Source of the DNA: Laetmonice hystrix
Lineage: Eukaryota
DNA: 64,000 nucleotides
Assembly (NCBI GenBank): GCA_965235115.1
Contig: OZ249439.1
Location: forward strand, 21,452,001-21,516,000
Direction of reading: 5' to 3'
Below the pieces are notes generated by a model. That model was not told the origin of the DNA. It was given only the letters and a program-made list of their open reading frames with translations, and did no database searches. Of this stretch, positions 3,201 through 35,200 are shown one piece after another (positions within the stretch are counted from its first letter, which is position 1; each line of letters opens with the position of its first letter). The position numbers and the translations under genes are program-made.

Positions 3201-6200
3201 TAAGCAATGACCACATTAATGGCAAAACATATTTTGATGCGTTCGGCGATAGGGCTATAGATACTCCAGAGACTTCAAGTAAAGAAAACCACTAATGTAC
3301 TTAGGAATTCGTTGTTGCAAACTATGACGTCACTTGATCTTTTTTCAGTACACTCCGTTTATTAAAGGAAAAATCACTTACTCGGGGATTTGCATAGAGC
3401 TTCTGGATTTCATTTCGAGGGCCCTGAACTTTACGTGAGTATAGTAGGCCTCTTCCTGCACCGCGATTTGTCCACGATTAATTCAACAGTTGATTTCTTG
3501 TTCCATCAAGTGCCGCTGAAAGTCAAACATCTTGTCGATAGGGTGTTTGTGATGGACAGGTAATTTCTCCAACCAGGTTTATTGTACATGAACAATAGTT
3601 TACAAAAGTTAATCCTTCTTGCAGGTGCAAATATGTGTACAGTGTGGACCGGAAATTTGGAGTATTGAAATCTGATGGCAAGTGGAACGGGCTCGTTGGC
3701 ATGATGCAACGCAAGGTAGGCCTGCAGCAATCAGCCGTGTTCGGGCTCGTGGCCCCATGTACGCCTTATAATGCCCTCAACTGGGTTACCAGGGTACGGG
3801 GCGAGGGCCGGGGGGGGGGGGGGGTCGTGGGAGTATTTCCAGGATTCAGTCACTAGTCGGACAAACAGTTTTACCCGAGCCTCCTCCTCGGCCCCCTCCC
3901 ATTAACGTGAGTTGAAACTTCAAGGGGTAGGCATATGCATGGAAACAATAGCGCGAGTAGATCTACGCCCCTGGTTACAGTTCAACGCTGTGTTTTTGAG
4001 AACAGGGGCGAAGAGTACAATAATATCTAACTTTGTGATATTGCAGGAGGTTGACATGATCGTGACAGGGTTGACGATCATAGCGTCCCGGGAGACAGTG
4101 GTAGACTTTACCGTGCCATTCTGGCAGGAGGAGTCGGTTGTCGTCCTCAACACCCCACCAGAGGGCAGCAGCTCGTGGCTGTATCTTTTTAAACCATTAC
4201 AGGTAATGTGTTAAATTTTCAGCTCAAGATATTTTGCTCTGAATTTCTGGAATCTGTAGGATGGGGAAAGCTTGACCTCTGATTAATATCTTACTGTGTT
4301 CACAGGGAACCGTCTGGTTGACGATTGGCATGTCGATAGGTGTCGCCACTGTCGCCTTATTCTTGGTTGAGCGCTTTCTGCCCATGACGTCAGGAGCAGG
4401 TCCTCGGAAACGCGTGTTATCTTTAGAACAAAGTCTGTGGTGTACAATATCAGCGTTTCTTAAACAAGGTAGCTAGGCCTAATTAATGTACAAACATATA
4501 TGTCATGAGCAAGAAATTATTCTCAACATCGGCTGAAGTCACTGGAAATAGGCCAACTGAACTTTATTTATTCTTTTACCGTGTAGGTCTGAAGGTCTTT
4601 CCGGGCTATTCGTCGGGGAGTGTGATTGTTGTCAGTATATGGTTCTGCTGCCTCGTGGTCGCAGCGACATATAGCGGCAATTTCATCGCGTCACTGACTG
4701 CGGTGCACACCCTGTCACTGTCAACAATAACTGACTTGGCGGACGATCCCAGTTACACAATTATTCTGAATGGTGGCGGTGTTCAACGTTTACTGTTACA
4801 GGCATGAACTCTTGAATTCTTTAGAATAGTTTCTACGGAAGACCGGTAGTGCCACACGATTATATTGTCTGAAATTTTCTCTCGGGCGGCCGCCAGATAA
4901 GTTATGTGGTTTATGATTATGGCGGCCGCCACAAAATGTGACGGCTGCCAGACAATTAAAAGAAAATGATTCCCCCAGTCGGTACATGGCCAGGCACATG
5001 CACATGCCGTGGATTTTTAGGCACTTTAGAAAAGATTTGAACACGATTGGTCACAAATCGTCAGGATCGGTCCGCTCGCTTGCTAGCAGACAGCAGCATG
5101 CGCATGCGCAAAGAGAGATAGACTGGAAATATAAGACACTGTGACGTCAACGGGCTTTCGGACAGTACCACAATGGCGGTGTTGCTGAAGCGGGTGATTT
5201 TTATGGAAATAGGTATCATGTTCGACATATGAATTCTGGGAAGAGGGGGGGGGGGATTTATTTTCAGACACTAAGTACTGTGGAAAGTTAGGCCTAAAGT
5301 ATAGCTGCGGTTAAAATGATTCTTAGACCTTAAATTATCTGCGGCCGCCAGATAAGTTTTCTGCCAGATAAGTTATCTGGCGGCCGCTAGATAATTTATG
5401 AACAGATATTATCAGCCGTATGGCACTAATGGTCTTCCGTAAGTTTCAGTGATACTGTTATACCATATAAATTCAATGTACCCCCTATACTATAGGCTTT
5501 AGTAGGCCTATTTCCAAATGCCCTTTCGGTTGTAGGCCTGTAGGACTATAGGGCGTCAGTTCCTGGACAGGTATAGCCGGCCCAGGCTTGGCTATAGGTC
5601 TAGAGAATAAAAGTAAGGGCACATGACGAAAAGATAGCAAATATAATAAATGTCCTCTTCATTAATTAAGTTAATTCGTTCCTATCGTTTAGGAATCCAA
5701 ACAAAGTGCGTTCAGCAAACTTTGGAAGAACATTATGTCAACATCAGACGTGTCCTTCGTGAAAACAACCAAGACCGGACTCAAGAAGATGTTAAACTTG
5801 ACAGACTCTCGAAAATACGCCGTCATTGGGGACTACTCATCCGTTCACACCAAGCTTGTCCGCGACTTCCCGGGCCGCTGTGACTGGCAGTATTTACAAG
5901 AGACATTTTTTCCTTCGGGGTTTGGAATAGGTCTACCAAACGGGTCCAGATATAAAAAATATTTTGATGAAGTGTGAGTAGGCCTATTACATAATCAGAG
6001 ATAACNNNNNNNNNNNNNNNNNNNNNNNNNNNNNNNNNNNNNNNNNNNNNNNNNNNNNNNNNNNNNNNNNNNNNNNNNNNNNNNNNNNNNNNNNNNNNNN
6101 NNNNNNNNNNNNNNNNNNNNNNNNNNNNNNNNNNNNNNNNNNNNNNNNNNNNNNNNNNNNNNNNNNNNNNNNNNNCATGTGATTCTGCGCCATTCAATTA

Positions 6201-9508: not shown

Positions 9509-12500
9509 ATGTTGAAGCGCAGTAACATCGCCATGTTGGTTTCAGTTCAGGCTATTATTTTACTGGTGCAGTTCTTCATCTTCTACCCCTGCCTTCAGGG
9601 GGCTTCATCAGAGGGCATCGAGAGGGTCCAGTCTCCAGTGAAACACGGCCGAGTGAAACGCAGCTTACGAGCTGAAAAGGATCAGGCTCCCAAGCCATTT
9701 GCTGTTCGTGCACAAAACGTTCTTGTCAAAGGAACCCTCCTTGACAAGCCAGCACCAGAACGTTACGAACCAACATGGGAGTCTCTGGAGAGGCGGCCAA
9801 TACCGCAGTGGTATGATGACGCAAAGATTGGAATCTTCATCCATTGGGGTGTGTTCTCCGTGCCAAGTTTTGTTGGAGTTGGTACAAACGGCCTGGCAGA
9901 GTGGTTTTGGTATTATTGGCGTACAGGAGAGGAGTCAGGAGTTTTTCACACCAAGGGAGCTATTGAAAGTGTGAAGAAGTTTGTAAAGGAAAATTACCCA
10001 CCAGATTTCCGATATGCTGACCTGGCTTCACAGTTCACCGCAGAATTCTTCGACCCAGCTCACTGGGCAGACATCTTTCAGAGTTCTGGCGCAAAGTAAG
10101 TGCATCAGAACTGTCTAATTTGATTTTTCTACCCCTCACTGTTGATTATGTATACTGTATCATGTATGGCATTGATGTTCTGATGTGGTTACAGGTATGT
10201 AGTTCTCACGTCAAAACATCATGATGGCTATGCACTGTGGCCGTCCAAGAAGTCCTGGAACTGGAATTCTATGGATGTTGGCCCACATAGAGACCTAGTA
10301 GGTAAGTGTATGTGTGACAAGTCATTCTTTCAGATTTATCTATGGACATTCTACGTAACAAACTATTTTGAAGCATGGCCCATTAATGATGCTTTTTTAA
10401 TAATCTAAAGGTGACCTTGGAAAGGCTATACGATCGAAGACAAACCTCCACTATGGCCTTTATCACTCCATATTTGAGTGGTACAACCCCACTTACCTGG
10501 AAGATGAGAAAAGTGGCTTCACAACGCAGAACTATGTTAAGGTAAGTAGTTGATTGTTTGGGTTTTCTCAATCTTAATCTCCCTGGTATTCCAGGCTGCC
10601 CCAGCATGGTCACTGCAGTTAAATTCATATTTCATATTTAACATATTTCAGTTTTGAGCATTTCAGTCAGCCATATGCCAGCAGCCATCAGCAGGTTTTA
10701 AACTTGGCGACATACCGCACCTGATTGACCCATACTGTTCTCCACTGTGGCAGGACTTAGAACAAGCTGTGGATTTTTGTTTTAGAACAAGCTTCATCCA
10801 GAGTTGAAGGACCTGGTTGTGACTTACAAACCTGACATTGTCTGGGCAGATGGTGACTGGGTGGCCCCCTGCAAGTACTTTAACTGTACCGAGTTCCTGG
10901 CCTGGCTCTACAATGACAGGTAAATATTAGAGGAGTTTTTCACTTCTATTGCTGCCTTACTACCCAACATCACAATATTACGGTAAAAATCAGTTCTTTG
11001 GTGAGCAAATCTAAGAACAGTGAACATTGATACTTGATGACGATGGTAAGTTTGGCAACTCTGTATGTCAGTTGAAGGAAAAAGTAGGCCAGCAATACGT
11101 GAAAAATCTTTGAAAGGCATTTCACAGCAATTTGGTAGTTTACTAAACCTGAGTTTCTTAGCACCCTTCTGAAAATAGTGAAATTAGGGTAACTTCCCTC
11201 CAGCTGTGGCATTCTATGAAATAAAATGCCCTTGAATGAAGTTTGCCTACATGTATAGAAAAGATGTTATGCTGGCTGACATTTGTTTTCTAGTCCAGTG
11301 AAGGATACAGTGGTGACCAATGACAGGTGGGGGAAGGAGGTATCGTGTCATCATGGTGGTTACCTTACCTGTAGCGATCGATACAACCCAGGTAATAAGA
11401 TCTTTTTCTCTCTTTTTTTACTCCTATTTGATTGTTGGTATCTGGGCAGAGTCATACATGGAAACTGTCGCTGTTTGTGCCAATGTGCTTAAGTTGTAAG
11501 CTGGTTATTATTTTCTAAGGTAAAAAGCAGGCGAGAAAGTGGGAAAACTGTATGACGATTGATCGTGAGTCGTGGGGATACCGACGTAATGCTGTCCTGA
11601 AGGATTACTACACCATGGAGGGACTACTTGCACTGCTGGCAGAAACCATCAGGTAGAGACGTTATATTGATAATAAAATCTAGGCTGCATGTATTGGCAG
11701 ATGGATGACGGAATGTAGTGAAAACCCGTGGGGAGTTAGGCCTGTAATGCACAGGTCACATTAATTGGAACACAAGCGCTAATAATGTTCTAACTCTTTT
11801 TTTCGCTGTGAAGATGGCCTTAGATGTAGAGATGGCATAAAACCATCAATACTCACTCATGTTCTGACAGACAATCGAGTCAGAAATCTTGTGTTAGAGC
11901 TGAGATTGGACATCCAGAGTTCCGATGTGATTTAAGAATTGTTAGTTAAGTGTGGGAATGTTTTAGGTGTAGGTATAGGCCAGACAGGTGTACAATGACA
12001 TTTGATGAGGGGAAATAATTATGTTAGTTTGATTTCAAACTGTTGGCTTTCGGAAGATTGCATCATGTTAAATGTGTGGTGAAAAGATATCGTTGTTCCT
12101 CTCTTTTTCTTCTCAGCTATGGCGGGAACCTGTTGATGAACATAGGCCCCACAGCAGATGGCCGCATCTTGCCGATATATGAGGAGCGTTTCGGACAGAT
12201 GGGCAGCTGGTTAAAGGTCAATGGAGAGGGTATCTACGGCACACACATGTGGCACACTCCCAAAGATACGGCCTCGCAGAAAGTCTAGTAAGTAATGATA
12301 ATAAATTATTGTTTGAATTTGCATAGATCGATGAACATATTAGGGTTTCAGGAGAAATGTAGTTTTTGGTAAAGATAATAAAATAAAGGAAAGAGAACTA
12401 GACTGGTTGAGATCTTGATTTGTCATGATAATAAATTACATACATAGTGGAAAAAATAAAAACTTGATCTTTACAAACCTTGATCGAAAATAATGGAAGT

Positions 12501-12906: not shown

Positions 12907-13691
12907 CATCCTTTTTTATCCTCCCTTAGATGTGTGTTCTGCTTGGAAGTGAGAAAATTTACGGGTGGAACAGCACAAATCACAATAATACCGGTAAGAA
13001 AAAGAGAAAAATAGCTCGAAACATATTCATCAATAGAGATCTTTTAATTAGTTAGGAAGGATATGTTATTTCCTAATTAATGATTTAAATGTTTATGTGT
13101 ACACTGTTAGATATGTGGGTCACTTGTTCCCGTTATCTTGTCTATCCTGGTCCCTGTAGGATAGGGCTGGTGGAGGCTCACTATCATCTAATCATGATCT
13201 CATTTCACCTACAGGGAGAAAAAACCTTAGCAAAGTTTTAATGTGGAATACAACAATGCTCTTTTGGTACTATATTATTAATGTACCATCAAATACATAA
13301 AATACATAATCCTACCAACTGATTGAAACTCATTGCACCTTTTTAAAAAAAAGTTTGCATGATGTGATTTCCCATTTATTTAAATTCTCATTTGTTATTT
13401 CGAGAGTTTAATCATGTTTCAAGCTTTAACAATAGATGGTGGTATGTGGCATGGAAAGATTTCACTGGTTATGTTGTGCTATGTCTCAGGCCACAGAGTA
13501 TAAAGTTTTATTGGGGTCCTCTCATTGAATGCCTGGGGGACTCGGCGCCTTGCTTGCTGCAGTTTGAAAGCTTACATATTGACATCAGCTTGAGTGACTT
13601 GACATTCTACATCGATCCTCCTGCTTACGCAACCGCTTTCTTCTTGCCATAGGAGAGTATGTGTCGGTCTTGGGCTAGGTGGAATGGGATA

Positions 13692-14525
13692 TATGAGGTG
13701 AGAGTGGGGTATCATAGGTGGAGTTGGCTATCTATAGGTGGGAGTGTGAGGCATGAGGTGAGAGTGGGGTATCATAGGTGGAGTTGGCTATCTATAGGTG
13801 GGAGTGTGAGGTATGAGGTGAGAGTAGGGTATCATAGGTGGAGTTGGCTATCTATAGGTGGGAGTGTGAGGTGAGAGTGAGGTATCATCTATAGGTGGAG
13901 TTGGCTATCTATAGGTGGGAGTGTGAGGCGTGAGGTAAGAGTGGGGTATCATCTATAGGTGGAGTTGGCTATCTATAGGTGGGAGTGTGAGGTATGAGGT
14001 GAGAGTGGGGTATCATAGGTGGAGTTGGCTATCTATAAGTGGGAGTGTGAGGCATGAGGTGAGAGTGGGGTATCATAGGTGGAGTTGGCTATCTATAGGT
14101 GGGAGTGTGAGGCATGAGGTGAGAGTAGGGTATCATAGGTGGAGTTGGCTATCTATAGGTGAGAGTGTGAGGTGAGAGTGAGGTATCATCTATATGTGGA
14201 GTTGGCTATCTATAGGTGGGAGTGTGAGGTATGAGGTGAGAGTGGGGTATTATAGGTGGAGTTGGCTATCTATAGGTGGGAGTGTGAGGCATGAGGTGAG
14301 AGTGGGGTATCATAGGTGGAGTTGGCTATCTATAGGTGGGAGTGTGAGGTATGAGGTGAGAGTGGGGTATCATAGGTGGAGTTGGCTATCTATAGGTGGG
14401 AGTGTGAGGCATGAGGTGAGAGTGGGGTATCATAGGTGGAGTTGGCTATCTATAGGTGGGAGTGTGAGGTATGAGGTGAGAGTGGGGTATTATAGGTGGA
14501 GTTGGCTATAGGTGGGAGTGTGAGG
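13692..14525. repeat. 60-bp G-rich minisatellite, ~14 copies
   Basis: Unit GAGGTGAGAGTGGGGTATCATAGGTGGAGTTGGCTATCTATAGGTGGGAGTGTGAGG(C/T)AT; period visible against the 60-nt lines. Confidence 0.97.
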
Positions 14526-16345
14526 TGTTTAGCTAAGAGAGTTTGGGCTATGTATGGGAGGGAGTGTAAAGTGTTGGCAAGGTGGGCAGGGGAGGTGTGA
14601 GGCTAGTTTGTAGTTAATATGTGTATTTAAGGGGGGGGGGGGGGCAACCCAGGAGTGTTTGATTTTTCTCGATTTAAGTAGGCCTAATTTCAAAGCTTTT
14701 TAGTCTCACCACCGAAAGTGTGTTGGGGGGGGGGGTCCTGATATTTAACACACTGTCACAGTCATCGGTTTTGTACTACGTTATACTTGCCGAGACGACT
14801 TCGTAACATTATCTATGCCTCAGATTGTTGTTTGACTGTGATAACCAATCGCTCACGATACTACCGAGTGCCCAGTCTTCTTGCCTTACCGGGGCAATGC
14901 CACACTGAAGGATCCTGTGGTTTTCTTGCATTTTCTGTTGATTGTATGAAATTCGAAATGAGAGATTGGGTCGAGGCCAGTATCAAGTATGTCTTAATCG
15001 TCATACTGCACACTTTATCAGCCAGATCAAACGGCAGATTTGTAAGAAAACTATAGCTGATGCTCGAATTTTCACATATTTTTTCTAATAAGTGTCGCAG
15101 AATGCAAGAGAATACGATTTATAATTTAAGAGCAGGGCAATGTGAGTATAGTTTACTGCTCTGAAAATTCCTGTTAAAGACCGGGATGATTTTTTTAATC
15201 AGCATTTCTTTATAGCTCTTTACAGTGTTGTGTAGAGTAATTCTCTTATTTTTGCATTTTGTCGTATGTTTTATATGTCATTGTCAGTTCAGTTAGCATT
15301 GTGGAGAAAGTGACTTGTATCCAGGTTCCTGTTAGTGACAGTGGACAAAGGGTTTAGTGTGTTAGGCCCTGTGATTCATTGGGCCCTGTTAGCAAAGTGT
15401 CAATACAACAACATAGGATTGGAAGTCGCTCCTGGTCACTGGGTGCAGGATCGCTAGGTCGGTGTACCTCTGGCCATTGTATCGACATCGTTTAGATCGA
15501 ACACCTAGATGTTCCGTGCTGGTTGTGTGGTGACTGTGGTTGGTATGGGTTTGTTATCATTTATCATAAATTATGTGAGGAGAAATCATGTGTGGACAGC
15601 AAATATATTTGAAATTAATTATCAATGAGCATTTGATATGTTTGGAGTTAGTGATCTATGGCCATGAAATATGTTCGGAGTTATTGATGTATGGGCGTTA
15701 AATGTATTTTACATTCGGGATCTATAGACATTAAACATATTTGAAGTCAATAAGAACTGATTTAATGTGTTTTATCTTCTGTTGACGAAGGCCAGTCGGT
15801 GTGTTGACCAGGTCCATTTGTCTACGTTATGTTCACTCGCTAACGTCAACATAGGGGTATCGATTTTTTTATTAAATGTGTGTCTGGTAAATAAATACAT
15901 GCATCACGAACGAAGGCACCATAACGAGATCGTGTGTTGTTGAACTGCTATACTTGTCTACACCTAGTGGGTTGAGAAAAAGGTCCTTGAGGCAACGGTT
16001 TGGTGGTAAAGGTCCTGTCCAAAATATGGCCACGCACTATTTGGTAATAAAGTAAGTAAATGCAAAATGTGTGCTTGGGTGATATGCCGTTTCAACAGTA
16101 TTTCGGCCTCATCAGGGCGACAACAACGCCATTAAACAAGTAGGTCTACTGTACCTTATGCCTGTGAACATTGGTCAGGATATTGAGAACGGACTGGTAA
16201 CGTTTCGAATTGAAAATAAAGCTGGACAGAGTTTAGACTTCACAGTTGAATTACTGCCTAAAGGGCGTAAACAGGCCCCGACAAAAAAAAAACACTCAGA
16301 GTACCGTAAGCCAATCATAATGCCATTGATACTGCTATTAGACAC

Positions 16346-18283
16346 TTACTCTTTACTCTTCTCGCCATTAGGTTTGTCATCATGTAAAATACTTTCAACA
16401 GTGTCAATGAACACTCTCCTATCTGGTGTTCTGATAAAGTTATCATCCAGGCTGATGTGCCTTATTCCCTTCAGACATGAGATTCTCTGACTCGCGTACA
16501 AGAAGAGTTGATTTACTCTCTGTACGAGTCGACCCAGCAACTTTCCTTTAGTTCGCTCTTCTATGAAGAGAACAATCGTAATGCGTTCTAGTTTAAGTAT
16601 GTTGTCTTTAAGTTGGGATATTTCATCTATCCGCTTTGTCATAATCGCAATAAGTAAATTGACCAAGCCCATTGAAATAACGACGAGGAGAAGTATATAT
16701 ATGATCATAGCAACGTGAGGTGTTGACGCACAGGAGAAGAAGACATCCTTGGGCGACATGACAGCGAGCATGAGAAGGAATGTTCCGTACAGCGCACCCC
16801 CCATCTTGCCCAGATTGTTCAAGTCCACACAGCTCGTGTTGCTCAGTGTTGTTAGATTCTGTGCACAGGCCGGGATATCGACGTGTAGTAGGAACAGTGA
16901 CAACGCAAAGGCAAGGAACACGAGAAATATAGTAAGGTAATATATAAGGGCGTCGACCATGAGTTTTTGTATGATAATGAGCAAGTGGCCTATGTTCTTC
17001 TGTACTTGGAGGAAGAATAAGAGGGAGAGTGGGCAAAGGAGCCCACCAATTAGAAAGCAGAACCGAATATATTTTGGAAATTTGCATCTGAATGGGTAGG
17101 AGATTCCGGTAAATAGAACGGCGATACAGAAGAATAACTGAATCACCCTGTAGACAAACGTGAACGTGACGGGGAAGTGGCCTTTCAAGATGTCTCGCGA
17201 TGAACTCAGGGACTCTTGTAAGTTGTTCTTGATGTGTATAAGCTCAACGCTCAGGAATAATGCTGCAAACACCGTGGCGAAGGTGAACACCACATAGGAC
17301 ATGGATCCAGTGTTGACAAATTGTAAAAGAGATTTGGCATATAGGATGACGAGAAGTGCCCATATAACTACGACACAGACTAGTCGATGGTAAAGGGATT
17401 GAAACTTCAGCTCAATCCAGGTATTAAAAGGTTCTCTAGAAAGTAACGAACTTCTTTGTGCACGGCAAAGCTGGCCTTCGTCCATCCTTGTTAAGTGATA
17501 CAGAAGTGACCTGTGGACCTTGGCATTAGGCCCCTCAAAGTCAGTGACGTCATAGCGAGCCATTCCTGTTGACCCATAAGTGGTGCTGCTCACCTTATAC
17601 ACGCCTGGCGTGGAGATGAGGGCTTGAAGCATTTCTGGCAAGCCGAGTTCTGCAGCCAACTCTACGGGTATCCTCCTCTTAAAGTTGGGGGTTCCTAAAA
17701 CTGATTTCCAAAGACATTTATCATCCACACTTTCACGTAAGTATTGGTACATTGAAAGAGATCTGTTTGGAATTTCTTCTGAAAGCCGAACCAGAACGTG
17801 TATGACATTTTCTCCAGCTGAATCGCGTGTCTGGAGAGTCGCCCCATGGAGTAGAACTGTCCTCACCACCAAGCGGTTTCCACTGGCGCATGCCATAGCC
17901 AGCGGTAGTTCAATGCGTCCTGCACTTTGGGTTGCCGTAAGAAGACTGTGGTCGACGGTTGGAGCGTGAGACATTTCCTCGTTCACAGACTTCTGTTCCT
18001 CGGGGGACAGGTCATCCAAAATGTAACTGAGGTAGGCGTGACCTGGAAATGAAACCGCCAAGTTCTCCGGCATTGTTGTTGGTGTGTTGAAAACCAGCTT
18101 AATAAGGTCTCTGTTCTGTATTTGATCCAAGATGGTAGAAAGTTCATGATAATCGTCTTTAAATAGAGCTGTGTGTAGAGGGGTAAGCACCATTGGAATT
18201 TCGTTACTTTTAGACAGCTGAAAGTAAAACTTTTCTAGGTATAATCTACATGCTTTCAATTCGAGGGTTTTAGACAGGCCCAT
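16346..18283 (-). CDS. TRPV-like channel, copy 1 (645 aa, intronless ORF)
   Basis: Ankyrin repeats (LPLAMACASGN, GENVIHVLV, PVELAAELG), TRPV-type linker (TYGSTGMARYDVTDFE), six hydrophobic segments, S6/TRP helix VNLLIAIMTKR..ILKLERITIVLFIEER. A splice acceptor 1 nt upstream of the ATG means the true N-terminus may be longer. Confidence 0.9.
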   Translation of the reverse strand: MGLSKTLELKACRLYLEKFYFQLSKSNEIPMVLTPLHTALFKDDYHELSTILDQIQNRDLIKLVFNTPTTMPENLAVSFPGHAYLSYILDDLSPEEQKSVNEEMSHAPTVDHSLLTATQSAGRIELPLAMACASGNRLVVRTVLLHGATLQTRDSAGENVIHVLVRLSEEIPNRSLSMYQYLRESVDDKCLWKSVLGTPNFKRRIPVELAAELGLPEMLQALISTPGVYKVSSTTYGSTGMARYDVTDFEGPNAKVHRSLLYHLTRMDEGQLCRAQRSSLLSREPFNTWIELKFQSLYHRLVCVVVIWALLVILYAKSLLQFVNTGSMSYVVFTFATVFAALFLSVELIHIKNNLQESLSSSRDILKGHFPVTFTFVYRVIQLFFCIAVLFTGISYPFRCKFPKYIRFCFLIGGLLCPLSLLFFLQVQKNIGHLLIIIQKLMVDALIYYLTIFLVFLAFALSLFLLHVDIPACAQNLTTLSNTSCVDLNNLGKMGGALYGTFLLMLAVMSPKDVFFSCASTPHVAMIIYILLLVVISMGLVNLLIAIMTKRIDEISQLKDNILKLERITIVLFIEERTKGKLLGRLVQRVNQLFLYASQRISCLKGIRHISLDDNFIRTPDRRVFIDTVESILHDDKPNGEKSKE

Positions 18284-18303
18284 TCTGGAAGGTTGTTAAA
18301 TAC

Positions 18304-18853
18304 CTCTCAGAGTGTGCACTCCTCTAGAGTATCGCAGACCTCTCACAGTGTCCACTCCTTGAGAGCCTCACAGCCCTCTCACAATGTCCACTTCTCTAGG
18401 GTACCTCTCACAGTGTCCACTCCTCTAGGGTCTCACAGACCTCTCACAGTGTCCACTCTGTGGTCTCACAGACTTCTCACAGTGTCCACTCCTCTAGAGA
18501 CCTTTCACAGTGTCCACTCCTCTAGGGTCTCACAGACCTCTCACAGTGTCCACTCTAGGGTCTCACAGACCTCTCACAGTGTCCACTCCTCTAGAGTATC
18601 AGACCTCTCACAGTGTCGACTCCTCGAGTATCGCAGACCTCTCACACTGTCCACTCCTCTAGGGTCTCACAGACCTCTCACAGTGTCGACTCCTCGAGTA
18701 TCACAGACCTCTAACACTGTCCACTCTAGGGTCTCACAGACCTCTCACAGTGTCCACTCCTCTAGAGTATCAGACCTCTCACAGTGTCCACTCTAGGGTC
18801 TCACAGACCTCTCACAGTGTCCACTCTAGGGTCTCACAGACCTCTCACACTGT
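18304..18853. repeat. 33-36-bp minisatellite directly 5' of TRPV copy 1
   Basis: Unit CTAGGGTCTCACAGACCTCTCACAGTGTCCACT(CCT) with CTAGAGTATC and GTCGACT variants, ~16 copies. Confidence 0.95.
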
Positions 18854-21164
18854 TCACCATGTGCACGCTCTCACAGAGTTGTCACAGAAGTTACCTTTCT
18901 CTTCTGTCACAGACTTGTTAGAAACAAAGACAACACGTGTCACACGTTCCGTAAGTTGTCGTAAATGGGCTGGAGGCTACGTCTGAGTTCACAAAACATT
19001 GCCGCAACTATGGGAACAGCCGTATAGATTACAGCATCCAACTAATGCCCCACCTGTTTATTCTGTGATTATGTAACTGCTGATGGAAAGACTCATTGAT
19101 TCCTGGTGTAGTCTACGGACTGTAGTCTACGGACTGTAGTCTACAAATATATTCGTCATCATGTTGCACGTTTGTCATCGATTTAGATTTCGGTTGATGT
19201 AGAAAATGTATGCAGATCTATGATTCTAACAAATGTCTTTTTAAATGTCAAACGGAACTACACATTAAACTAATGTTATGGTTCAACACAAATAACCAAC
19301 TAAAACTTAATTTAAACATGTTATATTTGTGTATTGAATATGCATCCATTTAAGTTCTCTTTCGTCCAGACTGTGTTGTTTGAGAGATTTCCTGTTCAAT
19401 ATCTTTAAAAACCCGAGCGGGAAATGCAGAAGTAGAATGAGCGGGTTGCAGATTTTATGACATGTCGGCAATTAAGCCAAGCTTCACGGCGGGAACTGCT
19501 AGAAAGATCGGAATACGGAACCTATGCGCCCACAGTGAATGATGGTAGCGGATGTTGGTTCACGTTGCTGTTGTTGGGCAGAGCAAACAATATTTTCCTA
19601 GTCTGTTTTTCGACTCTAAAATATAATTCAACACTTTTTGAATAAAGACATCATCATGTCCTCCTGTGATTCGATGCGATTTGTGAATGAAAACAGAAAC
19701 AGCCTCTTTTATTAGATCTCTAAATTTTATTAAGCAGGTATACTTATTCGGTACACAACCTAGTAGCCTACGTAATAATAAAAAAAAGGCATCCTTGCCT
19801 AGTAATTTATCTTTTTTTCGGAGACAATCCTCAACTGCCTTAGGGGTAAACCATTTGATACACACCAACACAGGGGTCGGGCAACAAAATAAGAGTGTCC
19901 TTTGTGAATTGCTTCTTTTTTTGCATGTGTGACCAGAACTGCCCTTTTTTGCACCATCTGCTGCACAAACATTTTTTGAAAAGAAAATATAAAGGTTATA
20001 TATGCTCACTGTGGGTATACCATAGTTAAATCTTTATATTAGGTCCTCGACACTCTCACAGTAGCAGAATATACGATAGGATCTTAACTACATCAGTATA
20101 CTGTAAACAACTATAGTAGGACAGAAAGCACAGATGCAATATTGACCTAAAAAAGATTCGGTCTGAAAGATTCAATATACATGTAACTATAACCGATGCA
20201 GTCCCAACACTGGCAGGAGCTAGATGCCCTTATGTAGTTTTATCTGCCGCTGGTAGTACATTTACATTACATGGCGTAATCATACACAAAGCTCTACTAA
20301 ACCTGCGGGGAACACATCTTGAATGATACCATAATCTACTACAATCTACAACATGAATGTTGACGGAGACCTAGCCTACCCCTCGTTCACATTGGAGGCT
20401 TGTTCCGACGCCTACCCGCTGTTTCGGGTGGCCACCTGAACGCAATCATAAACTACATCGCGTAAGCCCCCGAGTTGGGGGCATAGCTATGTCGGTGACT
20501 ACTTACGTCGAGTAACTTCAATCTGAACGCTCGCTTGCCGACATAGTGCACCATAGTGCACCAGGGGGTACCGGTGCATTGATGCAACCCTGAAAATCTG
20601 TCCAAACTATGACAAAAATACGCGTTTCTCGGTACCAAACCTTTGGCCAGGTCGCACTACTTGATGAGGTCTCCTGGTAAGTTGACTTTACCCATTTTTG
20701 TTAAAGCGGCAGCTTGGCCATCTGCGACGCCACCTAGGTGATTCGCTTCTCGACACGCTCTGGTGGGTATGGACTTTAGTGCGGGTAAGTGTCAATGTGA
20801 ACGCGAGCAGCCGTAAGATCTTATCAGATGTGCCAGAAAATTTTGGTCCGGACGAGCAGTGTGAATTAACCCCACCTAGGCCTACTATTCTAGATGTTTA
20901 AGTACATAATGCCACTTATGCAGGAATTTAGTTATTATGAGAGTGAGAGTGCTATTCCATATGTGAAGGGAAAGAACGTCTCAGTAAATATAAAGTTTAA
21001 AACGAGAAATGAAAGAAATTGAAATAACTCAATGATTGAACAAGTAAAGAGCAGAGAACATGTTTTACTTTTACACACAACACAGTCTCAAAATGTTTAA
21101 ACAGGAATCAAAGAAGTCAGCCAAACCATCGCCCAATAGTTTCAGAGAAAAACAGAGACTATAA

Positions 21165-23063
21165 TTAGTCATCATGTAAAATACTTTCAACAGTATCAAT
21201 AAAAACTCGCCCATCTGGTGTTCTGATAAAATAATCAGCTTCATCTCGTCTCTTTGGAAGTATGATTCGTTTGTTGGAGTACGCCAAGACTCGAGTAACT
21301 GCCCGCAAAAATAGCGCCAGCAGCTTTGTTTTCGTTCGCTCTTCTATGTAAAGGACAATCGAGATGCGTTCTAGTTTGAGGATGTTGTCTTTAAGTGTGG
21401 ATATTTCTTCTATCCTTTTAGTCATAATTGCGATAAGTAAATTTACTAAACCCATGGAAATAACGACCAATAGAAATACATACAATATCATAGCAAGGAG
21501 AGGCAGTGAGGAGCATGAGAAGAAGACATCCTTGGGCGACATGACAGCGAGCATGAGAAGGAATGTTCCGTACAGCGCACCCCCAATGTTGCCCAGATTG
21601 TTCATCTCCACACAGCTCGTGTTGCTCAATGTTGTTAGATTCTGTGGACAGGCCGGGATATCGACGTGTAGTAGGAACAGTGACAACGCAAAGGCAAGGA
21701 ACACGAGAAATATAGTAAGGTAATATATAAGGGCGTCGACCATGAGTTTTTGTATGATAATGAGCAAGTGGCCTATGTTCTTCTGTACTTGGAGGAAGAA
21801 TAAGAAGGAGAGTGGGCACAGGAACCCACCAATCACGAAGCAGGCCAGAAGAAATCTGGGACATTTACATTTGAATGGCATGGAGACAACAGTAAATATA
21901 ATAGTCACACAGAAAAATAACTGAATCATCCTGTATATGAACGTGAACGTGACGGGGATGTGGCCATTCAGGATGTCTTGCGTTGACTCAAGGAACTCCC
22001 TCACATTGACCTTGACGTGGCAAACTTCAACAATCAAAAATAATGCTGGCAAAATCATGGCCAAGAAGTAGAATGCAAATGGCACATCACCAGTATTAAC
22101 AAACAGTACAAAACATACACCATAAAGGATGACGAGAAGTACCCATGTAACTATGATACAGACTAGTTGATGGTAAAGGGATTGAAACTTCAGTTCAATC
22201 CAGGTATTAAAAGGTTCTCTAGAAAGTAACGAACTTCTTTGTGCACGGCAAAGCTGGCCTTCGTCCATCCTTGTTAAGTGATACAGAAGGGACCGGTGGA
22301 TCTTGGCATTAGGCCCCTCAAAGTCAGTGACGTCATAGCGAGCCATTCCTTTTGACCCATAAGTGGTGCTGCTCACCTTATACACGCCTGGCGTGGAGAT
22401 GAGGGCTTGAAGCATTTCTGGCAAGCCGAGTTCTGCAGCCAACTCTACGGGTATCCTCCTCTTAAAGTTGGGGGTTCCCAAAACTGATTTCCAAAGAGAT
22501 TTGTCATCCACACTTTCACGTAAGTATTGATACATTGAAAGAGATCTGTTTGGAATTTCTTCTGAAAGCCGAACCAGAACGTGTATGACATTTTCTCCAG
22601 CTGAATCGCGTGTCTGGAGAGTCGCCCCATGGAGTAGAACTGTCCTCACCACCAAGCGGTTTCCACTGGCGCATGCCATAGCCAGCGGTAGTTCAATGCG
22701 TCCTATACCTTGGGTTGACGTAAGAAGACTGTGGTCGACGGTTGGAGCGTGAGAAAGTTCCTCGTTCACAGACGTCTGTTCCTCAGGGGACAGGTCATCC
22801 AAAATGTAACTGAGGTAGGCGTGACCTGCAAATGGTACCAAGGTCGTTTGGAGAGTTGTTGATGTGTTCAACACCAATTCGATAAGGTCTTTGTTCTGTA
22901 TCTGCTCCAAGATGGTAGTAAGTTCGTCATATTCGCCTCTTAACAAAGCTGTGTGTAGAGGGGTAAGCACCATTGGAATATTGTTACTTTTAGACAGCTG
23001 GGAGTAAAATTTCTCCAGGTATAATCTACACGCTTTCCACTGGAGGGCTTTACACAGACTCAT
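21165..23063 (-). CDS. TRPV-like channel, copy 2 (632 aa, intronless ORF)
   Basis: Colinear paralog of 16346-18283 with the same ankyrin, six-TM and TRP-helix motifs. Confidence 0.9.
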   Translation of the reverse strand: MSLCKALQWKACRLYLEKFYSQLSKSNNIPMVLTPLHTALLRGEYDELTTILEQIQNKDLIELVLNTSTTLQTTLVPFAGHAYLSYILDDLSPEEQTSVNEELSHAPTVDHSLLTSTQGIGRIELPLAMACASGNRLVVRTVLLHGATLQTRDSAGENVIHVLVRLSEEIPNRSLSMYQYLRESVDDKSLWKSVLGTPNFKRRIPVELAAELGLPEMLQALISTPGVYKVSSTTYGSKGMARYDVTDFEGPNAKIHRSLLYHLTRMDEGQLCRAQRSSLLSREPFNTWIELKFQSLYHQLVCIIVTWVLLVILYGVCFVLFVNTGDVPFAFYFLAMILPALFLIVEVCHVKVNVREFLESTQDILNGHIPVTFTFIYRMIQLFFCVTIIFTVVSMPFKCKCPRFLLACFVIGGFLCPLSFLFFLQVQKNIGHLLIIIQKLMVDALIYYLTIFLVFLAFALSLFLLHVDIPACPQNLTTLSNTSCVEMNNLGNIGGALYGTFLLMLAVMSPKDVFFSCSSLPLLAMILYVFLLVVISMGLVNLLIAIMTKRIEEISTLKDNILKLERISIVLYIEERTKTKLLALFLRAVTRVLAYSNKRIILPKRRDEADYFIRTPDGRVFIDTVESILHDD

Positions 23064-23579
23064 TTCAGAGTTTCTTCTCTGTGTTTTGTCTTGCCGTTAT
23101 GTCCTTTAACAGTATCTACCCTTCTGTCCGTTCTGTCCGTCACAATGTTCACACCTGTATAACACACACCTGTATCAGCAGCAAAGATGGGTTCAAGACT
23201 ATGTGTAACTAATTCTTGTATATAAATAGCGATTGAGGGGAACCAGCAGAGCCTGGGAATATGAGAAAATGAATCCATAGATTAAGGGATCCACTATACT
23301 GAGTGTTGGTTATTCAACAAATAGAAAGAGAAAAAGTCCAGATACACAAATATGTTCATCATCATGTAATTGCACCTGTCATTGATTTTGGTGTCGGTTG
23401 AACCCACGGTATTTTGTTACTGTTTAATGTCGAACAGCAATCTGTTTGTTCAGTGAATGCACCATCTATTGAATCTCGCTTTATGTACACTGGGTTGTTT
23501 GAGAAACTTTCTGTTCAAAAGCTGTACAACACTGAGCAACAAACAAAAGAAACAATATAATGCCATGTAGTCACTCTAA

Positions 23580-27020: not shown

Positions 27021-30000
27021 CTACATATTTTCCAACTTGGTGATTTTAAAAACCCAGCCCCATTGGCAGGGCATTGCAGCTAGAGATATTTTAGGCAGAG
27101 AAAGAGTCATGCCTCTGTCTGTCTCTTTCTTCCAAAGGATGGAATTTGCCGGGGCACTATAGCCCAGCCATGTCACCTCTGTGTGCATGGTTGGCGTTGG
27201 TATCCCAAGTTTAAGGACGTCATTCTTGGGCCATTTTAGGACAATGGCATACACCACTCCATAGGTTTCATCCTTGGGCTGTTTGCTTGTGTAACTGTTG
27301 ATAAAACACAAGACTCCATTTTTGAAAATGTCAATGATAACCACTGAGTGAAGAAAGTGGAAACTCTGCATGCACATATTTATATGACATTAGCCTGATG
27401 CTCCTTCAGATATGTTGTCTAAAGTGGATTGCTCTAATTTCAGGAATAGCAAAGAATACAGGTCATTTTTTTCACAGCACTGACACAATTAATAGTGCTG
27501 ATATACTTACTATACATCACTGTTGAGAGAATCTTTGGGAGTGTGCCACATGTCTGTGCCATAGATACCCTCTCCATTGACCTTCAACCAGCTGCCCATC
27601 TGTCTCAAACGCTCCTCGTATATTGGCAAGATGCGGCCATCTGCTGTGGGTCCTATGTTCATCAACAGGTTCCCGCCATAACTGGAAATAAATATCTATT
27701 GAGTCAATAAACAAATTCACACAATCCAATATCTTTTTTTCATTTTGAACATCATTTCATCACTTAGAGCATTACAGCTTAAAAATGTACGCATATAATC
27801 TATGCTAACAAAAAAATAATGTTATTTTCACTTTTCCTTTCTATGCTCCTTGATTCATGTACAATAAGGTGAAATATGATGCAGGCCTACAGAATGTTTG
27901 TACATTTCTCTGGCTAGCACTTAGCTTATACAGGCAAGTCTAGATACCTATTTAACTTTACTAATCTGAAAGCCATACACATGCACTGACCTGACAGTTT
28001 GTGCCAGAAGTAAAATTAGTCCCTCCACAGTGTAATAATCCTTCAAGACAGCATTACGTCGGTAACCCCACGACTCACGATCAATTGTCATGCAATTCTC
28101 CCATTTACGTGCTTGCTTTTTCTCTGAAAAAGAAATTACAATTAAGACCTGTCAATTGAAGCAGTGAAATTGAGAAGGAGCAAATGGAAAATGCATTCTA
28201 GGCATAGAGCTTGCTGGGAGGTGACAAGGTCTTACCTGGGTTGTACCTGTCTTTACAGGTGAGGTATCCACCATGTTTACATGAGACGTCTGTCCCCCAC
28301 CGGTCATTGGTCACTACACTGTCCTTCACTGGACTGCAACCATGTCATATATAAGGTCAGAGGCAAACTACACAAAATATGGTTCCACCTACAGATATTT
28401 ACATCTAACATAATATTGTCTATTACAGAGACAATAAAGCTGCTAAATTAGAAACATGTGGAGACCTGTCATTGTAGAGCCAAGCCAAAAACTCGGTACA
28501 ATTCCAGTAGCTGCATGGAGCCTCAAAGTGCCCATCCGACCATACAACTTCAGGTTTGTAGGTATTAACGAGGTCCAGTAACTCGGGCATCATCTTTTCC
28601 TGATGAATACAGGGAAAACACATGGCATGAATAACCTGACTCCTGAATGTAAAATGCAATTCACAACTATGAACAAGACGAAACATAGAGTTAACCTTTG
28701 TGCCAAAAGATGGCAACCTTCAATAACCTAAATTTTTGTCCCAAAAATATATATATTTATTAGAAAACTAAAACATGGGGAACATTTGAGTTTCCCATGA
28801 AAACTCATCACAATGATCAGTCTCACTTAAACCGACATATTTTTTAAAAGAACGTTTAATACTTTCAAATACTCTAGTATAAAACACACTCAGTTCTCCC
28901 TTGATTTATTCTATCAGTAAATGGGTGGGTGGGTATTTGGGGTTTTACGCCAGGGTCATATCCCGGCGGTGAAGATGATGATGAAAGTCAGTTTTTCTTG
29001 GTGGAGGAAACCGGAATACCCGGAGGAAACCACCGACCTTCAGGAAGGAACTGACTGACAAACCTTTCACATATGTATGCAGCCCAGGCCGGGGATCGAA
29101 CCCAGACCATAGAGGTGTGAGGCGATGGTCCTAGGTGTCATGAGCCAACACCTTAGACCACTCAGCCACCCAAGGCCCCTTCTATCAGTAAAGCTTTTCT
29201 TTAATCAGTGCATTATAATTTATATAAGTAAAAAACCAGCTTTCTGTGCTTACTCTGACATACTGCTGTGTCTTGAATCCACTGAGTTTGTCACTGTTGT
29301 AAAGAGGGTTGAACCACTCATAGAGTGAGTAGTAAAGACCATATTTCAATCCAGCGTCTCGTACTGCTGCACCAAGCTCTCCTGCATGAAACAAATTACA
29401 CCTTAACATGCCCTTCAGCTACATTTATCTAAGATTCTTTCAATAATACATTAATTTCAAGTCTTCAATATGTACAAAGTTTCATTTCAATCTAAGTCCT
29501 GAGGGTGATAAAGACTGTTAATCTCAGAATGGCCTTTCTCAGTCAAATGTAGACCATGATATCCCAGGCCTTTCGTTTTGAAAAATCTCCACTCTTTTAT
29601 TTTAGAGACTTCCCTGGCTTGACACCTACCCACAAGATCACGGTGTGGCCCAACATCTGCTGCATTCCAGTTCCATGACTTCTTCGATGGCCAAAGTGTG
29701 TATCCTTCATGATGCTTGGATGTCAGTATGACATACCTGTATGTATAAAAAATGTTCACACCCTTCATCATGCCAGCGACATAGCACAATGTGTTCCTGA
29801 TAGAAATTGTCAACTTAGGAACTCAGTATACAACTATAAATCTGAGTGAAACAATTTGTACAGTTCTTAATAGGCAGGAAACTGAACATTGTTTTGACAG
29901 TTTTGTACAAGTTAAGAGTTCTTTGAAAAATAAAAAAAATCCAGGTCGGGAACATTTCTCAGGTCGGGAGGGGATGCTAAACAAGCAATTTTTTTTATGT

Positions 30001-30741
30001 GACTTTATGTATATGTTTAATTTTAAACGTCCTCGATCACTTTATATGATAAATCTTGAAGGCTTACCATTTTAGCCAGCTGTCATCTAAAAAAAATTTA
30101 ATTTAACAAAAAAGGCCACACCACTTTTGAATATTCCTCATACCAGAAACCAGCCATTTTTTTTGGGGGGGGGGGGGGGCAGTGTATACTTAGCTCAATA
30201 GCTGGCAATTGGCAGGGTTACAATTAGGTTTACTCTTTGACAAAGACTCACTTTGCTCCAGAGTCTTTGAATATTTCTGCCCAGTGCTGTGGATCAAACA
30301 TTTCTGCTCGGAGCTTGGGTGCAAAATCTGTGTACCGCACTTTTTGGTTGTACGTCTTATCAACAAAGTCTTTAACACTTTTAATGGCAGGAGTACATTT
30401 CTGAAGGAACATCTGAAACCTTTGCTGATGATAATTGTCAATGGGCTGCACAAACTCTTCGTTCTTCCAGTAGAACCAGAACCATTCAGCCAAACCCTTC
30501 GTTCCAACTCCAACATAACTGGGAACAGAGTAGACACCCCAGTGGATGAAGATTCCTATTTTGGCACTGTCATACCACTCTGGTATAGGCCGGGAATCAA
30601 GTGATTTCCAGTTGGATTGGTAACGAACCAAATCTACCTGCTGCTGTGAGTGCACTTTGACATCACTTTTCACAGGTGATTTGTGGGAAAGCTTATCATC
30701 GTGTGCAACACCTTGTGCACCCACTGGCACTGGTGCAACAA

Positions 30742-32277: not shown

Positions 32278-35200
32278 TTAGAAAAGTTTCTTAGAGATAT
32301 CGTCAATACCCGTATCATTATCCCAGGGACTATCTGAGAACAGGTCATCGGATAGTTCACCTGACACATCCAGCAATCCACTGGTTCTGATATTTTGTGC
32401 CGTCGTTGCTAATAGTACACCCTCATTTTCACGTTGAATATTTGTACCACTTTGTTCAATTTCTACACCAGAATTAACACCTTTCTTCACATAGTTCCGA
32501 TTCTGGCTTGGTTTGATAACGTGCGAGTCACACAAAGACAGACTTGTGTCGGAGAACAAGTCTATGCTGTCACTCTCTTGTGGATGGTTTTCTTTGTTTT
32601 CTCCACTACCACAAACCCTCCGACTACACTGGTACTCCAAATAATTTTTCTTGATAAACTTTGCTTTCAGCTTCGTCACGGGTGAGGTTAATTTCTTCTT
32701 CAAGGATATTCTCTTTTTGAATTTTCTGATGACTTTAGTACTTGGTGGCACACAGAATGACGTATCTGAAGATGAACAAGAAATATCCAAGTTTTCGGAT
32801 GCCCAAAGAGGCTGACTTCCAGCTGCATCCTTAGGCATAACCAAAGGTGTACTGTGAAAGATTCCGTTCATCAGTGGACGACGTGGAAAGACTTCGGGAC
32901 TTGAGGGTAATTCGTGTGTTTGTGTTTCCAACGTGTTCTCTATAAACTGAGGCGATTGTTGACTAGAAAAGAGTGCAGCACCTATTCTCAAACACGATCT
33001 CCGTCTTGCTGACCTCTGTGGCAATGGTGTTTGTTTCATTCTGCTGTCTATGTCAGCAATATTCCTGGTTGAGATGAGGTCTGCAGCATAGCAGACACTT
33101 TTCCTCCTTGGCTTACTTTTCTCCTCCTTCCTCCCTTTAGTAGCCCAAGCCGTCTGCTCCTTCTGTACTCGGTCGAATGATGTGTTAGAATTATCCAAAC
33201 TTTCAAACAAGTCTGCCTGGGTACCAACTATGTCTGAACTGGAGCTGTCATTTGTTGAGGTTTCAACAATAACCTCTAAGTATCCAGTAGAATTTCCAGC
33301 CGTGCGTGTATTTCTCTCCACGGTTGCTATGCACCTACAGTCTCCGAAGGGTTCGTTTGCCATCTTGTTTTTCACTTTTGCAGGATTATTTTTCTGTACG
33401 TTAATATCTACCTTCACTTTGGGATTGACTACCACAGATAGTTTTTTGTTGCGACAGACATCAGAAGTATGATCATCATCGGATCCCGATATGACACAAG
33501 AGTCCTCATCATCAGTGAACAATGATGATGGGCTGCTGAAGAGTTCCATAGACTCCTCGGAGCTGACATTTTCAACACTGTATTGTGGTGACTTTGGTGT
33601 ATCTTTAACTCTATAACATTCTGCATGTTGCATACTTTTATTTCCGTTGTCTCTGCTACTGCACTGTTTTCCCCTCATCTCGCCTTCGGTTCCTCGATAT
33701 TGTAAACACTCAGATACTAGAGAACCACCACATGGTATTATGTTACTACCAGTGGGGAGGACGTCATCATGAGAACCTTGACCTCCCACTAACAGACCAC
33801 AGTTAGAGTCCTCTTCATCGTACGTCCTCAGACTTTTATCACAATGGTCAGACGATCTGTCCAGTGCATCACTGTCTACAGCTGCAGGACTATCATTGTT
33901 ATCATTCAGTGACACATCACACCCAGAGGTATAGCACTCTTCAAAGTGTTGGACAAATCGGTTAGTCTCAGAACAAAGTGGACCAGCTGTGGAAGTAGCC
34001 GATTCTTTAGCTGTATTCGTAATGGTGATAGCTCCCACAGAATTTTCACTCCTTAATCCTTGCTTGCCTATTGGTAGATTCTGACTCTCCTGCACTAGAA
34101 CTGTATCACTAGCCGAATTTTCTTGCTTATTAAAGCCTTTTGTAAAATCTTCCTGCTCCTCCCTGACCATTATAGAATTTTTCACAGGAGGTTTTGCCCC
34201 TTCCGAACTCTCTGTTAACTGAGCAGAATTTTCTTTGACAAGATCCTGCTGAGAGAAAGTCATGTCGGCAAGAAAAGCATCCAGATCTTCAGAAAAAGGC
34301 ATAGTCAATGGCTCCTCAGTAATGTCGACATCTGAATCTAATGTACTCCGATCCTCGGTCTTGCTATTTGCTCTGTCCCTTACAGATGGAGTCTGACTGG
34401 CAGATCCGAGTCCTACAACTGTATTCATACCACTGTTGGATTTATTATGATGAGAAACGGGGTTTAAATTGTTCTTTGTGGAATTGAAACTTTCAGTTTT
34501 AGTGTTCGTGGATGCACCTCTAATAAAGTTGGCATCTTGCTGTAATCTGTCCCTTGATTTGGTGTCTGGACTGTCCACCTGCGTAATGACCTTTGGAAAT
34601 GTCTCCAGGCCTCCAGCGAGTGGTGACTTCGATCTGACGTCAGTCTCATCCTCCAGATTGTAAGGCTCAGGATCAGCCAGCAACAGGTAACTGTCATTGG
34701 ATGACATACTCGCATCGGAAACATGAGCTATACACTCCAACATACCACTGGTATTCTCATCTTTGTTTGGCCCATCTTCAAAGTTAATACGTGCCTTAAC
34801 AGAAATTGAAACTTCATCTTGATTACAGACTTGCGTACAGCCTTGCTGGCGAATTTGTGATGGTTTTGCAATAGCCTCTTTAAAGTATTTGAAATAGTAA
34901 TTACTGTCCTCAAGTGGGGAATTTTCTTCTCCATCAATGCTACAATCATCGTTTGGCCCATCATGACAGTAAAAATTACAAGTATTTGCTTTTAAACGCT
35001 GCACATCACTGGGACTCACAAACGGGTTGTTATTGACAGGGTCACTTGGGGGAGAAAACCTTTTTGGTGATATGTAGCTGAACTCATTTAGATCAATTGT
35101 TTCATCAGGATCCATCATTTGTTCAGGGTCTGACAAAACTGGGTCGTCACTTTCGGAGGCCCCTTTTCTCTGACCAGTCTGTGACACAGTTAGTGCACTG

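Follow-up and report, generated by a model that had tools for sequence, protein, structure and literature searches.

A 64-kb stretch of the genome of Laetmonice hystrix (C4:21452001-21516000 in a 627-Mb assembly of 35 contigs; the whole stretch is referred to below as the window) raises the question of how two neighbouring ion channel genes came to be nearly identical in some parts of their coding sequence and strongly diverged in others. The genes, A (16346..18283, minus strand, 645 amino acids) and B (21165..23063, minus strand, 632 amino acids), are intact, intronless open reading frames (ORFs) encoding TRPV-like channels; they are the sole copies of the TRPV-like gene within the window, lie in tandem on the same strand with their starts ~4.78 kb apart, and share 79% amino acid identity. 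An original prediction, made from the DNA alone, had described the pair as a mosaic whose ankyrin and pore blocks are kept alike by gene conversion while a sensor module formed by transmembrane helices S1-S4 diversifies. The best explanation of the results, to which we assign a probability of about 0.85, is that A and B are old tandem duplicates in which two tracts were recently overwritten by interlocus gene conversion, the borders of these tracts being gated by constraint.

The mosaic was delimited by a two-state segmentation of the A/B codon alignment, which set the block borders in alignment codons. Codons 1-80 (the N-terminus; 81% DNA identity), 304-416 (S1-S4; 71% identity in DNA and ~52% in protein) and 517-627 (S6 to the C-terminal tail; 72% DNA identity) were assigned to a high-divergence state, while codons 80-303 (block I; 97.3% DNA identity) and 417-517 (block II; 97.7%) fell into a low-divergence state. 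Block I (17375..18046 in A, minus strand, residues 80-303) differed from B at 19 of 672 nt and comprises the later ankyrin repeats, the linker beta-hairpin, the pre-S1 helix and the first turn of S1; block II (16733..17035 in A, minus strand, residues 417-517) differed at 8 of 303 nt and comprises the C-terminal half of S4, the S4-S5 linker, S5, the turret, the pore helix and the filter. Their counterparts in B (22158..22829 and 21516..21818, respectively, minus strand) were placed by the segmentation together with direct comparison. Between the blocks lies the unconverted S1-S4 cassette (17036..17374 in A, residues 304-416; 21819..22157 in B; minus strand), in which 98 of 339 nt differed. The 5' part of A (18047..18283, minus strand, residues 1-79) and its 3' part (16346..16732, minus strand), with S6, the TRP helix, a variable tail and a conserved C-terminal beta-strand, were also unconverted. 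Gaps in the codon alignment consisted of one codon before the C-terminal tail and three codons inside the tail; at the 3' end, the two genes differ in length by 9 codons. An extra low-divergence patch at codons 22-39 (2 of 54 nt differing) and a run of 27 identical nt at codons 628-636 were too short to be called.

On direct comparison, the hand count of 9 differences in 534 nt (17387-17920 versus 22170-22703) given in the original prediction was exact, its approximate 7 in 300 for 16734-17035 versus 21517-21818 became 7 in 302, and the divergence it had noted between the two blocks was borne out (99 of 351 nt differing). Near-identity of the first block was correctly recognised, although block I actually extends ~125 nt further in the 5' direction. 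In the same way, the description of the ankyrin and pore regions as near-identical holds for the later ankyrin repeats and for the segment from the second half of S4 through S5 and the turret to the pore helix, but not for the first ~80 residues, S6 or the TRP helix.

Silent sites carried the evidence for exchange. Nei-Gojobori estimates of synonymous divergence (dS) were 0.049 in block I and 0.029 in block II, compared with 0.48 in residues 1-80 (ratio of nonsynonymous to synonymous divergence, dN/dS, 0.33), 0.54 in S1-S4 (dN 0.31, dN/dS 0.56), 0.78 in S6 plus the TRP helix (dN/dS 0.21), 0.93 in the variable tail and 0.62 in the C-terminal strand (dN 0.03). Silent divergence was thus 10-20 times lower in both blocks, indicating a recent homogenisation superimposed on a much older duplication. 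At fourfold degenerate sites of identical codon families, 3 of 152 differed inside the blocks versus 24 of 77 outside (98% and 69% identity, respectively; Fisher p=3.4e-10). No run of identical silent sites as long as the longest one observed (83) arose in 10000 permutations. Blocks I and II were equally diverged (p=0.83), and the dS of S1-S4 could not be distinguished from that of the other unconverted parts (p=0.6, and p=0.38 in a second test). Identical stretches of DNA extended to 174 and 158 nt in the blocks; the maximum was 19 nt for S1-S4 and 15 nt for S6-TRP. Both tracts therefore combine a silent divergence far below the paralogue background with sharp borders, the pattern by which gene conversion is recognised, and homogenisation by conversion, as originally proposed, is supported.

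The presence of both copies in the animal was evaluated with contigs from three public sequencing runs (X1/X2/X3) of one sample, and these contigs break exactly at the block borders. A 423-nt unitig specific to A (16993-17415) had depths of 78.8/52.7/31.7 in X1/X2/X3 and the 423-nt unitig specific to B (21776-22198) had 65.6/57.7/34.8; each carries the S1-S4 cassette of its gene, and both are comparable to the unique spacer at 18820-20297 (72.6/56.1/33.4), while the shared unitig of block I reached approximately twice the single-copy depth (134.7/108.2/73.9). A heterozygous site at 20954 showed about half the single-copy depth. The variant letters seen in shared-block contigs were in every case those of B, as expected of merged A/B paths. 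A and B are separate loci at diploid dosage, and the haplotype collapse by which the original prediction could have failed was not found. The site at 20954 belongs to a heterozygous haplotype (20954-20992) found at half depth in 3 of 3 runs, with A>G at 20954, 3 nt inserted after 20958 and a further 36 nt added between 20991 and 20992.

Outside the coding sequences, blastn homology between the two loci ends at the start codon and at the stop codon of B. The original statement that the flanks do not align was nearly right, except for two short collinear matches upstream (19143-19197 with 23346-23401, and 19370-19418 with 23489-23537). These residual matches are found at a distance of 283-475 nt from B but of 860-1135 nt from A, an offset of ~580 nt that arises because a ~600-bp minisatellite (18288..18893, period 33-34 nt) stands directly upstream of the start codon of A and is absent upstream of B. 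The promoter-proximal sequence consequently differs between the genes. An ORF on the plus strand at 18293-18796 is the translated minisatellite repeat. Neutral flanks at a dS of ~0.6, with insertions and deletions, are expected to be unalignable, and the flanks of A and B agree with an old duplication. The spacer between the genes also contains a high-copy dispersed repeat (20316..20912), with many loose ends and a contig depth of 1200-3000 versus ~70 for unique sequence.

From these patterns we infer both the mechanism of conversion and a constraint-gated origin of the borders. A and B would descend from an old tandem duplication (silent divergence ~0.5-0.9) of an intronless gene for a TRPV-like cation channel, each being kept by purifying selection, and recent non-allelic conversion (silent divergence 0.03-0.05) would have overwritten internal tracts of 672 and 303 bp. 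As the blocks are equally diverged, this may have happened in one discontinuous event or in two events of roughly the same age. The original divergence would persist in the first ~80 codons, in the 339-bp S1-S4 segment and from S6 through the C-terminal tail. Tracts would occupy regions under strong family-wide constraint and stop where this constraint drops, the fastest-evolving segment (S1-S4) being the first to escape conversion. Given that no identical run longer than 19 nt is left in the diverged parts, these would be closed to exchange, and homology-dependent repair could probably no longer start in or cross them, which would make the mosaic self-sustaining. The same process would operate across the family, since N-terminal cytoplasmic homogenisation stops at the pre-S1/S1 junction in two further clusters.

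Conservation along the family agreed with this scheme. Its values were 0.44-0.54 over residues 201-300, 0.30-0.36 over 301-360 and 0.56 at 421-440, and the steps (down at ~301, up at ~421) coincide exactly with the block edges; across the family, no region is less conserved than S1-S4. At equal dS, S1-S4 had roughly double the dN of the remaining unconverted parts (p=0.01). Positive selection, which would have been in line with the diversifying sensor of the original prediction, was not seen: dN/dS was significantly below 1 (p=0.017), although a few selected sites could escape a pairwise average of this kind, and replacements were as conservative as elsewhere and fell on family-variable columns. 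Only 3 of the 54 S1-S4 differences affected conserved columns, and two of these three were V/I and L/I exchanges. Both single-nucleotide polymorphisms found in the S1-S4 segment of A (run X1) were synonymous.

In addition to A and B, the segment analysis was applied to other close pairs of the family, giving 5 pairs from 3 independent clusters in total. A further tandem cluster of the family lies at C8:18.89-18.90 Mb. The tandem genes L020 and L018 (C11:1199090-1208985, with a third gene at 1214271-1215818) share 58% amino acid identity and are 22% identical to A/B. This pair contained a single tract of 214 nt (96.3% identical, dS 0.06-0.16 versus a saturated background) that spans the linker and pre-S1, its end lying at A-equivalent residue 309, the start of S1. 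In a trio of intronless TRPV-like genes (L039, L040 and L033; C6:27630305-27640968; 77-81% amino acid identity), one of which is inverted with respect to the other two, the entire N-terminal cytoplasmic domain (~1050 nt) was 97.7-98.5% identical in DNA; the tract ends at A-equivalent residue 294-296, and dS in the transmembrane domain was 0.5-1.9. L039 and L040 shared a second converted tract, which runs from the end of S6 over the TRP helix into the proximal C-terminus. Tracts in the three independent clusters thus end at A-equivalent residues 303, 309 and 294-296, that is, within ~15 codons of the pre-S1/S1 junction. The chance of this coincidence under uniform placement over ~630 codons is ~0.002, a rough and post-hoc estimate. 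S1-S3 was the sole part left unconverted in 5 of 5 pairs.

Several other histories could be considered for the mosaic. That no exchange took place, and that the blocks are alike only through very strong purifying selection, is the least probable of them: the blocks do coincide with the best-conserved parts of the family, but their excess of identity extends to fourfold sites, and protein constraint cannot explain it because S6 and the TRP helix, whose protein sequence is equally conserved through purifying selection alone, still have a dS of 0.78. An assembly artefact, in which A and B would be two haplotypes placed in tandem or the blocks would have been homogenised by polishing, also appears very improbable. 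All reads derive from a single sample and no record extends across both copies, which leaves room for such an error, yet the copy-specific S1-S4 unitigs occur at spacer depth while the truly heterozygous site at 20954 occurs at half of it; the shared block has double depth with contigs that mix A and B letters, flanks and spacer differ, and the minisatellite stands upstream of A only. A mosaic would likewise result if the order of events were reversed, with A and B duplicated only recently (dS ~0.04) and then receiving diverged N-terminal, S1-S4 and C-terminal cassettes from other paralogues. Such a history is regarded as scarcely credible, as it calls for three separate imports of the same age, the flanks have diverged too far to align, the S1-S4 cassettes match only themselves and their partner (73%) in the 627-Mb assembly, and the next paralogues have at most 32% protein identity. 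A third copy as donor of either S1-S4 cassette was accordingly rejected, the genome search having returned only self and partner.

More weight has to be given to selection as the force that sets the borders, a possible though doubtful account in which conversion would act gene-wide and tracts carrying the partner's S1-S4 would be purged because the sensor modules have functionally diverged. Extended by analogy with red/green opsins, and with the same reservation, the homogenised cytoplasmic and pore-entry parts would keep the subunits competent for co-assembly and the S1-S4 peak would be a footprint of selection. Ligand sites are held by S1-S4 and the S5 interface in TRPV and TRPM channels, the excess of dN in S1-S4 points in the same direction, and the recurrent border at S1, with S1-S3 spared in all five pairs, fits a systematic sparing of the sensor module. 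A divergence peak flanked on both sides by converted tracts is, moreover, the published signature of such selection (PMC3924837). Against this stand a dN/dS that remains below 1, with conservative replacements on family-variable columns and so few on conserved ones, and the fact that S1-S4 is the least constrained region family-wide, which alone would predict its early escape from conversion. The N-terminus and the S6/TRP helix escaped too, so that the division is not simply one of sensor versus rest. It is simpler to suppose that conversion continues only in stretches whose DNA is held similar by constraint, and the constraint-gated reading is ranked ahead of the selective one, although the two are not mutually exclusive. 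A still more far-reaching idea, that each tandem cluster might supply interchangeable, co-assembling subunits with distinct selected S1-S4 sensors, as a combinatorial receptor system with domain-bounded concerted evolution built in, is judged less probable again; conversion would there maintain identity of the N-terminal cytoplasmic domain within a cluster and, in A/B, also of the core from the second half of S4 through S5 to the pore helix. The assembly-compatible, sensor-diversifying design for ligand-tuned or heteromeric receptors put forward in the original prediction is possible but hypothetical.

Some observations weigh against conversion gated by constraint, or narrow what can be concluded from it. 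In A/B, the S6/TRP-helix segment has remained unconverted in spite of its strong constraint, so that constraint alone does not account for every border. GC-biased conversion found no clear support, given that the GC content of third codon positions was raised in block II only (0.62-0.64, above the rest) and not in block I. The closest relatives were 40-49% identical (best 48-49%), with no sister-species orthologue in an exhaustive representative search, a distance too great for the classical tree-based proof of conversion, in which paralogues cluster by species within the tracts and by gene outside them. On the inspected contigs of the best relatives, the gene was single-copy within +/-10 kb. 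The reads come from one sample and study, probably the source of the assembly itself, and were available as contigs, none spanning both genes, so that the linkage of A and B rests on the assembly. No RNA run was found to contain the region.

The identity of the encoded proteins was supported at several levels. Pfam searches with A and B alone gave only sub-threshold ankyrin matches (20-22 bits), and an Ank_2 match was found in 26 of 40 family members. A phmmer search against PDB retrieved TRPV2, 3, 4, 1, 5 and 6 (best TRPV2, E 3.5e-11), with Nanchung scoring below TRPV1-6 in this single-sequence search. The exhaustive search yielded 490 relatives, mostly of 600-650 amino acids, and with a profile of 40 sequences the top 60 matches were all TRPV1-6 (E ~2e-45), extending from the later ankyrin repeats to the TRP helix. 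The AlphaFold model (predicted local distance difference test score, pLDDT, 87; predicted template modelling score, pTM, 0.83) led to the same assignment, the top 50 Foldseek matches in PDB being all TRPV (E 1e-15, template modelling score 0.55-0.63, ~650 columns). By sequence and predicted fold, A and B are TRPV-type channels, as had been proposed, an assignment that does not distinguish TRPV proper from TRPVL.

In the model, ankyrin-type paired helices occupy residues 35-223, which the profile aligns to TRPV repeats, and are followed by S1 (ending at 325), S2 (330-353), S3 (376-398), S4 (403-425), the S4-S5 linker with S5 (429-467), the pore helix (486-505), S6 (522-557) and the TRP helix (559-579). 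The helices assigned in the original prediction agree with this model. Strands predicted by DSSP on the model form a hairpin (230-236 and 239-245) and a C-terminal strand (624-631), the latter kept between A and B by purifying selection, as seen in its low dN. The S6 gate motif NLLIA (542-546) aligns to the TRPV2 gate, with N542 invariant in the family; the N-x-x-I-A lower-gate fingerprint of S6 was defined in PMC9242649. The TRP-box tryptophan is not present, ILKLE (~562-566, also the family consensus) aligning to IWKLQ of TRPV2. In the filter, VMSPKD (~506-512) aligns to IGMGEL of TRPV2 with no glycine matched, although the turret and filter could be aligned with low confidence only; P511 is shared by all family members. 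These features suggest that pore and gating details may differ from those of canonical TRPV channels.

Compared with vertebrate TRPV1-6 and the invertebrate TRPVA/B (Nanchung/Inactive) and TRPVC/D, A and B have in common the ankyrin repeats, beta-hairpin and C-terminal strand, pre-S1, S1-S6 with the NLLIA gate motif, pore helix and TRP helix. They differ from the solved TRPVs in being only 15-19% identical to them, short (632-645 amino acids) and intronless, and from known TRPVs in carrying Leu in place of the TRP-box Trp and, at low alignment confidence, no glycine aligned with the GMG filter, and in being part of a lineage-specific expansion that counts at least 28 intronless members in this genome. 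TRPVL (vanilloid-like) channels are a sister family of TRPV (PMC9664204, PMC12980990), and divergent TRPV-related channels occur in some invertebrates, including unplaced lineage-specific clades near TRPV/TRPVL, among them molluscan ones (PMC12980990, PMC9242649). The likeness of A/B to TRPVL and to the unplaced molluscan genes is one of description only, all being divergent TRPV-related channels.

Regarding the surroundings, the pair is bracketed by two alpha-L-fucosidase paralogues that converge on it with their 3' ends and whose catalytic-domain exons (Pfam PF01120, matched exon by exon) were located at ~9749-12228 on the plus strand and ~27570-30649 on the minus strand. Nesting of the channel genes within a fucosidase gene was rejected, as on neither side do the catalytic-domain exons reach the pair. 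The last catalytic exons form an inverted repeat (12106-12267 versus 27531-27692) with 92.6% identity; this may be another conversion tract, the identity being above expectation if the rest of the paralogues is diverged. A second minisatellite, with a period of 60 nt and at least 11 copies, occupies 13621-14670, and the GC skew is very strong (0.40 over 14-16 kb); an ORF listed at 14194-14511 is a mere translation of this repeat. Elsewhere in the window, an ORF of 1179 amino acids at 32278-35817 (minus strand, GTG start as listed) had no Pfam match at E<=0.001, and 170 N at 6006-6175 mark an assembly gap or masked sequence.

Tandem channel paralogues can, as these genes illustrate, be partly homogenised along protein-domain borders, and for such families whole-gene identity, trees and duplication dates become misleading as a result: the overall identity of 79% masks a duplication ~10-20 times older than the converted blocks imply. 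The recurrent end of tracts at the pre-S1/S1 junction, in three clusters and at least seven genes of one genome, offers a system for asking what sets the borders of conversion. If it is true that selection sets them, the clusters would represent natural S1-S4 swap experiments for mapping the sensor function of TRPV-type channels. The pattern itself is real and recurrent; an adaptive design, which the pattern does not demonstrate, is possible.

Interlocus gene conversion is well known to produce mosaic divergence in tandem paralogues (PMC3924837, PMC3966223, bioRxiv 10.1101/2025.10.29.685298), and within the literature searched no report of a conversion mosaic in TRP channels was found. Primate red/green opsins and HMA4 of Arabidopsis halleri show, as A/B do, stretches of low divergence beside diverged ones (PMC3924837; bioRxiv 10.1101/2025.10.29.685298), and in these systems, too, converted tracts flank a peak of divergence, and the effective rate of conversion differs from one part of the gene to another. 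Unlike opsins and HMA4, A and B are intronless, all borders lie within the coding sequence and these coincide with protein-domain borders. The opsin peak is centred on known spectral-tuning sites, whereas that of A/B has no known functional sites and shows a dN/dS below 1. A and B are thus a clean further case of a known kind of conversion mosaic, to which they add a recurrent tract end at a domain border within a lineage-specific TRPV-like expansion.

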